Positions 21,295-22,522 of a stretch of DNA of 64,000 nucleotides are shown here, one piece after another. This DNA is from Pavona decussata (Eukaryota), in contig CDRNST010000091.1 in assembly GCA_977016875.1 (NCBI GenBank), positions 558,001 through 622,000 of the forward strand, in the 5' to 3' direction. A model generated the notes under the pieces. It was not told the origin of the DNA. It ran no database searches and saw nothing but the letters and a program-made list of their open reading frames with translations. How positions within the stretch are numbered: the stretch's first letter is position 1; the number at the start of each line of letters is the position of its first letter. The translations under genes were made by a program, and so were the position numbers.

Positions 21295-22522
21295 CTAGAG
21301 CAATATTCATCATCCTTTCTACAAGTCTGCCACATTGTTCCTCCCAACTGTATTTCCTTGCATATTTTCCACAAAGATCTTTAGCCTCTTCAAGCCGTAC
21401 AGCCCTGTCTTTTTCACGAACAGACCTGATTGCCTTGGCCCACTCTTTAGGATCCTCTGAATTGACGACGTTGTAAGAGCCAAAAGGCAGTTTCTTTAAA
21501 GCTTCTCCAAGACCCGAGTTACCACTGACAAGCACAGGGAGACCAGCAGACAAAGCTTCAAGCGCAACCAGTCCAAAGCCCTCCGTTCTTGATGGCATTA
21601 TAGCAAGATCAACTTCACAAAACAGTTTGGCCAGTTCAGCTCTGCTTTCCTCATAAGAACGCACCCTCAGTTGTTTACGGTCAATGCCATGCTTGCATAA
21701 CTTTTCTGCTACTTCATCCTCTTTTCCAGATGGTGCCCCGACGAACACAAGCTGGTAAGAACTTTCAGACAACTCGGCAACTGCCTTCACGGCAATGTCA
21801 TACCCCTTCAGTTCAAAATCTTCATAATCACCACGACCAAACACCAAAACACAAAATGTTCCACTTTCTTCTGTGGCTTGCTTGACATGAGAAAATTCAG
21901 AGAAAATGCCTGGGGTGAGCTGGAATACAGCTTGATCCTTTTGACAGTAACGGAGATAATGGGAATATGCATCTGCCAGCTTCGGACCAATTGCAACAAC
22001 TTGATCTGCACACTCACACAACTTTATCTCTGCTAAGCGCTTTTTCGCACCTTTGGGGATCGCATCAGTGTACCCTTTGAACATTCCCAGTTCTTCTGGA
22101 GCTGTGTGAACAACCTGAAGCCAATTACAGTGGTGACGTTGTCGAATGAGTTGTACTTGTCGGCCAAGGGGCAGCCCATGTCCTATTATCCAATCAATGC
22201 CATGGTTTTCTGGTAGAGAGGACAACCAGTCAATGGGCTCAAAACCTATCAGTTCTTTTGCTTCAATAAGATGGACATTGTGACTAGCAGCAAATCTTTG
22301 ATCCTCTTCACTGCACTGAGGGAGATACATACTGACTTCCACATTCTTGTGTTTTGCCAACTGAATGGCAAGCTCTCTGTTAATGGTTGACAAGCCTCCC
22401 TTTGTAGATCGCCATTCACTACTCAACAGAGTAACTTTCAGTGTCCTGTTAGAAGCCAAGCTTGACCCACTCTCTAGGCATTCCTGTGATGTAGAGGCTG
22501 ACGTGCTAGGCAAGGAGGAATC
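21295..22522 (-). CDS. Gene A exon 3: GT-B fold glycosyltransferase (GT4 / Glycos_transf_1-like)
   Basis: GGLS loop, VVHT, GRG..KG and E-x7-E motif (TEGFGLVALEALSAGLPV); acceptor tgttttag|GAT, donor CTAG|gtatgt. Confidence 0.93.

Follow-up and report, generated by a model that had tools for sequence, protein, structure and literature searches.

In a cluster of coral GT4-NACHT genes, three parts of one glycosyltransferase (GT) exon have very probably had different histories, and segmental concerted evolution around a protected enzyme-core cassette is the account favored, with good confidence. The block structure of the exon, the unequal ages of its blocks, the exchange of its ends, and the re-assortment of cores with neighboring modules can all be read directly from the copies compared below. 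In the process proposed, the 5′ end (S1, about 265 nt) and the 3′ end (S3, about 315 nt) would be copied repeatedly between neighboring paralogues by gene conversion, and would evolve in concert within the cluster; the core between them (roughly 650–730 nt, aa 89–304) would escape conversion and persist as old lineages, designated A, B, and C, under purifying selection. The core would move only as an intact cassette, and recombination with endpoints in the homogenized ends would re-assort cores with other linker introns and NACHT exons.

The window, meaning the whole 64,000-nt stretch analyzed, is positions 558001–622000 of contig C91 in a 602-Mb coral assembly. It contains 2.3 copies of a 26-kb tandem unit and no runs of N. 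All protein searches were run on single exons. The GT exon of the first unit (copy A), with the acceptor read as ttttag/GAT and the donor as CTAG/gtatgt, matches the Pfam GT4-conflict family PF20706 over profile positions 3–385 of 385 (E 9e-84, 282 bits); that of the second unit (copy B) does so with E 1e-86 and 292 bits (cutoff 26 bits). NACHT exons of 3.7 kb follow 2.7–3.3 kb downstream on the same strand (Table 1). The architecture in both units is that of coral GT4-NACHT genes, encoding putative NLR-like STAND receptors, and the same order of GT and then NACHT is also present in the other assemblies examined.

Table 1. Features of the window discussed in the text (positions are those of the window).
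Feature	Position	Strand	Description or basis
GT4 glycosyltransferase exon, copy A, A-type core	21295..22522	-	409 codons + 1 base; Pfam PF20706
S1, 5′ end of exon A: strands b1–b3 and Gly-rich loop	22260..22522	-	homogenized across all cluster copies
Core cassette, type-specific, aa 89–304: N-domain b4–b7, interdomain linker, C-domain b8–b10	21611..22258	-	two-breakpoint fit and AlphaFold model
S3, 3′ end of exon A: E-x7-E motif and C-terminal helices	21295..21610	-	homogenized among copies
Linker region 3′ of GT exon A, second swapped module	18536..21289	-	non-homologous to that of B (42266–45405)
NACHT exon, copy A	14836..18582	-	Pfam NACHT, E 3e-22
GT4 exon, copy B, B-type core	45411..46644	-	core about 45727–46380; Pfam PF20706 and alignment to A
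NACHT exon, copy B	38718..42383	-	Pfam NACHT, E 4e-23
Stretch of copy A alignable to unit C91:470k (L002/L052)	21302..24589	.	BLAST, 95–97% overall

Repeats of two kinds surround these genes. Unit 1, and no other unit in the window, carries a BEL/Pao-type LTR retrotransposon (5666–11177) with ORFs for gag-protease, RT, Peptidase_A17, and DUF5641; its LTRs (5666–5816 and 11029–11177) are 95% identical. A G-rich 80-bp satellite lies 5′ of each GT exon (23960–26600, 47190–50270, and also C91:472878–477708). It includes inverted blocks, for example 24397–24673 against 25233–25510, and its length differs among units, from 2.6 to 4.8 kb.

Nucleotide identity between exons A and B is 93.2% in S1, about 72–75% in the center, and 88.6% in S3. 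An earlier note on this DNA, made by inspection of the sequence, had described a divergent center at 21610–22260, sharply bordered, between a near-identical exon start and a similar exon end. The description is borne out: six residues differ among the first 88, the similarity after the center is that just given for S3, and the center, put at ~60–65% identity by hand count of its first half, is 63% identical in amino acids. The best two-breakpoint model places the divergent part at 22258..21611, with a difference rate of 0.282 inside and 0.093 outside, and gains 2dlnL 73.9, against a maximum of 24.7 across 500 site shuffles. Synonymous changes are as numerous in the center as the note had it: dS between A and B (Nei-Gojobori) is about 0.25–0.28 at the ends and 1.0–2.0, near saturation, in the center, and in sliding windows of dS and dN along the exon dS is strongly non-uniform. 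A further statement, that the center is more divergent than the neighboring introns, is right for the body of the 26-kb unit (89–92% identical) but doubtful for the introns that flank the exon: in the 5′ intron, 80% of aligned bases are identical and 90 columns are gaps, and the 3′ linker of A (18536–21289) has no alignment to that of B.

Since dS rises from about 0.25 at the ends to at least 1 in the center, selection alone is insufficient to produce the A/B pattern. A center evolving fast under positive selection, with no recombination, is accordingly a very improbable explanation: center dS is at least four times that of the ends and near saturation, dN/dS in the core is 0.12–0.24, and the trees of the segments are incongruent. 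Its one point of support is a McDonald–Kreitman (MK)-like table for the core, with fixed nonsynonymous/synonymous differences of 84/63 against polymorphic 83/117 (p = 0.005); this excess is set aside because saturated synonymous sites inflate the ratio.

The genome contains at least 150 GT exons, of which 50 were sampled, 25 of them from the cluster on contigs C91, C289, and C339. By core type the cluster copies divide into seven A (including window copy A), 12 B (including window copy B), and six C. Fixed nucleotide differences between the A and B types number 148, all within 22295–21563 and nearly all within 22258–21593; there are none in the ends upstream of 22295 or below 21563. Another 50 sites are polymorphic in both types, with the same two bases segregating in each, and 47 of these are in the ends (20 in S1 and 27 in S3, at positions 22505–22312 and 21551–21305), against three in the core. 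Fixed and shared sites are divided between ends and core with Fisher p = 2e-42, and all 67 fixed amino-acid differences are in aa 89–304. The ends, with 47 shared polymorphisms and no fixed differences, have the pattern expected of concerted evolution. Between types, dS is 0.28 in S1, 1.0–2.0 in the core, and 0.28 in S3; within types it is 0.1–0.2 throughout the exon. GC3, as a signal of biased conversion, does not differ between ends and core.

The cluster copies have several features of their own. All C-type GT exons have an insert of 485–554 bp at about aa 150 (e.g., L031:2275–2759; also in L032, L034, L035, and L036, the five loci being at C91:644k, 418k, 227k, and 156k and C289:2255k). 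It is bordered by a 6-bp target duplication, CAAAGG, which gives AAAG/GTATTT at the 5′ side and ...TTGTCCAAAG/G at the 3′ side. Splicing at the duplicated sites would excise the insert exactly and keep the frame, and copies with the insert still have dN/dS of 0.11–0.28; judged from these borders, it is a candidate for intron gain by transposon-like insertion. In-frame stops (TGA, TAG) interrupt two A-type GT exons, and a frameshift near aa 96 disrupts one B-type copy (loci L003 at C91:186k, L007 at C289:2208k, and L033 at C91:257k), and single stops are found in several NACHT exons as well; part of the cluster therefore consists of pseudogenes. The C289:2138k unit (L006) and the C91:470k unit (L002) have NACHT exons that are 99% identical and near-identical S3 segments, and the order of types along C289:2109k–2256k resembles part of C91. 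C289 may be a haplotig of C91 or a very recent segmental duplication, and some of its "copies" may not be true paralogues.

Separate trees for the ends and the center, as the earlier note had proposed, were built from sampled GT exons, and their topologies disagree. In the S1 and S3 trees, the A, B, and C copies form one clade apart from the genes of contig C64 (97/97 for S1), with the types intermixed inside it; in the S3 tree the A-type copies fall in two groups. In the core tree each type is monophyletic (99–100), A groups with C, and B groups with the C64 genes (98/95, aa 89–305). An AU test on the core rejects an A+B clade (p = 0.0045); for the single end segments, where power is low, the core topology is not rejected (p = 0.19 and 0.105). 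The test is not fully independent, because the type groups were named after distances had been seen.

Ends could also be alike because strong protein or RNA constraint holds them, in an exon that is equally old throughout. The Gly-rich loop and the E-x7-E motif do sit in the ends, as this would require, but their divergence between clusters keeps pace with that of the core: in comparisons with the C64 genes, dS of the ends is 0.7–0.9 and dN 0.15–0.18, equal to the core values (for A against the C64 type Da, dS in S1, core, and S3 is 0.70, 0.71–2.6, and 0.77). The likeness of the ends within the cluster is therefore due to recent exchange and not to constraint. Together with the shared polymorphisms of the ends, their lack of fixed differences, and the intermixing of types in the end trees, this leaves constraint with a very low probability.

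The same borders recur in other comparisons. Between A and C and between B and C, the 5′ border is the same (aa 75–89), and fixed differences drop at aa ~305–320. The separate C64 cluster has two core types, Da and Db, with the same block, bordered at aa ~81–89 and ~305–320: fixed differences between them rise at aa 81–100 and fall after aa 300–320, and dS is 0.21 in S1, 0.78 and 0.49 in the first and second parts of the core, and 0.24 in S3. In a different genome, ERZ26692694, contig ctg14639 has an A-core gene (P0003) and a B-core gene (P0081) 18.7 kb apart, with dS of 0.13 in S1, 1.22 in the core, and 0.34 in S3. The cores of these two genes have dS of 0.21–0.22 to their counterparts in the window's genome, taken as orthologues from their similarity. 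Since the core dS of 1.22 compares with 0.21–0.22 between putative orthologues, the core types are several times (about five-fold in dS) older than the split between the genomes, and the ends are not. This is clear in S1, where dS is 0.13 between the paralogues in ERZ26692694 and 0.17–0.27 between putative orthologues; in S3 the two are roughly equal (0.34 against 0.21–0.31). More distant assemblies carry cores of the A/C lineage; that of P0005 is 80% identical to A and 69% to B, and its ends are only 76% identical to A. The mosaic is present in ERZ25073805 too, but because its P0001 is 100% identical to L002 in the segments compared, this is apparently the same genome and not independent support.

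The earlier note explained the divergent center by gene conversion, which would have imported it from a distant paralogue. In this reading A and B are young duplicates, and one short conversion tract swapped in a core from a distant, diverged source. It agrees with a 26-kb unit that is mostly 89–92% identical around some 650 nt at about 72–75%, short patches are typical of conversion, and copy A is indeed a recombinant with an identifiable source lineage. As a single event it is nonetheless improbable, for several reasons. The same borders are found in seven A, 12 B, and six C copies, in a second cluster, and in another genome; measured in dS, the split of the cores is about five times as old as that of the genomes; and the neighboring introns are themselves divergent or non-homologous. 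Nor did a genome-wide search find the distant donor: leaving aside A-type copies, the cores nearest to that of A belong to the C type in its own cluster (76–81% amino-acid identity) and then to the contig-C64 genes (67–69%), and it is unlikely that a donor is hidden in copies left unsampled or unassembled. The A/C core lineage may ultimately go back to an ancient import. What stands of the original proposal is that recombination builds the mosaic and that copy A received its A-type block in a recent exchange with a paralogue; the single event and the distant donor do not.

The extent of that exchange is seen in a comparison of copy A with the C91:470k unit, 110 kb away. The two have a tract of about 3 kb in common, in which the core and S1 diverge by 1–4% and the 5′ intron is 95–97% identical. 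S3 differs by 9.3%, and close similarity consequently begins at the 3′ edge of the core, near 21611. The 5′ end of the tract falls inside the 80-bp satellite, which may for this reason be a recombination site. Outside the tract the linkers do not match, the NACHT exons are 65% identical in amino acids, and there is no match upstream of the satellite (the data for this far end being partial); these parts of copy A resemble units B and 3 of the window instead. As judged from the alignments, copy A is a recombinant whose exchanged block exceeds the core and whose source is a paralogue in the cluster, and copy B is an ordinary B-type member. Because the shared stretch takes in S1 and the 5′ intron, the 5′ border within the exon is not a tract end. 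The sharp borders, read in the earlier note as the edges of an imported tract, mark the edges of the homogenized ends.

Segmental concerted evolution is also consistent with how the modules on either side of the exon are combined. The type of the 5′ intron tracks that of the core: A copies have 5b or 5c, and 11 of the 12 B copies have 5a. Because the 5′ intron and the core are both linked to type and S1, between them, is exchanged, S1 is probably exchanged by short non-crossover conversion tracts. The 3′ linker, of which there are at least two types, is by contrast with the intron independent of core type: 3a accompanies six A copies and eight B copies (window copy B among them), and 3b occurs in window copy A, in two B copies, and in every C copy. 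NACHT exons are likewise re-assorted. That of A is 83% identical in amino acids to that of B and 57–65% identical to those of other A-type GT genes; those that accompany A-type GT exons (window A, the L002/L006 pair, and L004/L005) are mutually only 57–68% identical, and those that accompany B-type GT exons are in some cases 80–84% and in others 57–64% identical to that of A. Several NACHT exons, no more than 68% identical, are found with each core type, by NACHT classes drawn from partial data; a scheme of three NACHT classes proved too simple, the L002/L006 exon forming a class of its own. Many NACHT matches to the exon of A start only at about residue 123–126, and the first ~125 residues of this exon may be another exchangeable module.

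The exon ends could conceivably serve as recombination joints, by which old and incompatible cores, presumably with different substrate specificities, are matched in the germ line with many NACHT/sensor modules, in a combinatorial arrangement of effectors and sensors maintained across species. We regard this extension as tentative and rather doubtful.

Clusters as repetitive as this one may be assembled with paralogues chimerically joined, and C289 may be a haplotig. A mosaic produced by such an artifact is nevertheless extremely improbable: it is present in many copies and in the different genome ERZ26692694, and contigs from run X1 (organism A; putative RNA) span the S3/core border of copy A (21540–21626 and 21597–21871) with one mismatch each. 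X1 contigs match exon A at 97% identity or more and leave the adjacent introns uncovered. They have loose ends at 21294 and 22524, the borders of the exon, where they continue in other sequence as spliced RNA would, and one of them switches at the 5′ border of the core (22259) to B-type sequence. Among the X1 contigs listed (again, putative RNA), none joins a GT and a NACHT exon. In the coral metatranscriptomes X6, X7, and X9, contigs are found on S1 and S3 only, with none on the A core. The X1 contigs are suggestive of expression of copy A, and the metatranscriptomes speak neither for nor against it. A separate signal comes from within the linker, where the summed contig depth at 19976–20172 is 15,000–25,000 in three coral metatranscriptomes; elsewhere it stays below 1,300. 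The probable source is a dispersed repeat in the linker intron that is transcribed at a high level. An Rfam scan of the linker gave no match.

The AlphaFold model of the GT domain (pLDDT 87.5, pTM 0.85) has a GT-B fold, with two Rossmann-like lobes. Its best PDB match is to MshA (3c4q; E 1.5e-19, TM 0.72/0.75), and BshA, PglA, and WaaG are also matched. The domain is like these retaining GT4 enzymes in predicted fold (TM 0.72–0.75 to 3c4q) and in having the E-x7-E motif and GRxxxxxxxxKG in all core types; it differs in having only about 20% sequence identity to them, and in its predicted fusion by splicing to an NLR-like receptor. Both glutamates of the E-x7-E motif (E314 and E322, in S3) and G42 and G43 of the Gly-rich STKGGLST loop (in S1) do not vary among 27 family members, and all core types keep the GRxxxxxxxxKG phosphate-binding stretch, which lies inside the core. 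Because these three elements are conserved, all three core types look catalytically competent.

In GT-B enzymes, acceptor binding is chiefly the task of the N-lobe, and nucleotide-sugar binding that of the C-lobe. Given this division of binding between the lobes, it is plausible by analogy that the core types differ in substrate, and the proposed process includes such a difference among the three. The core would be kept from conversion by selection, acting on co-adapted residues of the catalytic cleft or on distinct substrate specificities and directed against chimeric cores, or by sheer sequence divergence that exceeds what conversion tolerates in homology. No receptor-like diversifying selection was found, either as a dN/dS that exceeds 1 or, apart from the MK-like excess set aside above, as surplus fixed replacements. 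In every segment and comparison dN/dS is 0.06–0.37, and the sliding-window maximum is about 0.6; within types, core dN/dS is 0.06–0.22. The idea that the effector enzyme is "diversified like a receptor" does not fit these values (0.1–0.3 between types) or the discreteness of the types. As far as substitution patterns can tell, the cores are a few discrete, conserved enzyme classes under purifying selection, and not hypervariable.

Partial gene conversion is familiar from other gene families: in protocadherin variable exons, in plant R-gene clusters with chimeric members, and in the MHC, diverged or specificity-determining segments stay distinct while the rest is exchanged, and mosaic genes result. 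The coral cluster differs from these in that its protected segment spans both lobes of a GT-B enzyme. A close likeness is to the zebrafish NLR-B30.2 genes (Howe et al., 2016; PMC4852459), also a large tandem NLR family in which one part of the gene is homogenized and another falls in old groups, with dS and tree topology differing between the parts and groups that predate a species split. In zebrafish the parts are whole exons or domains (NACHT and B30.2), and the variable one is a sensor under positive selection; in the coral cluster, by contrast, the borders lie inside one exon, that of an enzymatic effector, and the protected block is under purifying selection. In the literature searched, no description of such an escape from partial conversion was found for a glycosyltransferase effector or for cnidarian NLR-like genes. 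Segmental concerted evolution has precedents in other immune gene families and, in the literature searched, none among coral GT4-NACHT genes; what sets the cluster apart from the known systems is the position of the borders within an exon, the protected middle of an enzymatic effector, its purifying selection, and the recurrence of the borders in two clusters and two genomes.

The expansion of the GT4-conflict family in corals has been described, with more than 500 paralogues in Acropora digitifera and GT4 N-terminal to NACHT (Kaur et al., 2021, PMC8195603; Hamada et al., 2013, cited there), as have tandem clusters of GT4-NACHT genes in non-syntenic regions of Acropora assemblies (PMC12314368). 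As far as their accessible text goes, these papers concern the same family and architecture and cover its expansion and domain combinations. No description of a sub-exonic cassette or of gene conversion was found in the accessible coral GT4/NLR literature searched, and the term "gene conversion" occurs 0 times in the available text of PMC12314368. Gene conversion is given as very rare in corals in the accessible portion of a genome-wide study (PMC10236652); relative to the statement made there, the cluster in the window is a clear local exception.

For this gene family, the cluster is a documented case of a coral tandem array in which gene conversion over short tracts is frequent and recombination is modular. 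Trees of whole exons or whole genes mix histories, and GT trees in these clusters should therefore be built segment by segment. Biochemical work can start from concrete constructs, namely cores of the three types (A, B, and C) exchanged at aa 89 and 305, for which distinct substrate classes are predicted. Coral genomes have hundreds of GT4-NACHT genes, and in those examined here the enzyme domain appears as a few discrete, long-lived cores shuffled against different sensor modules.
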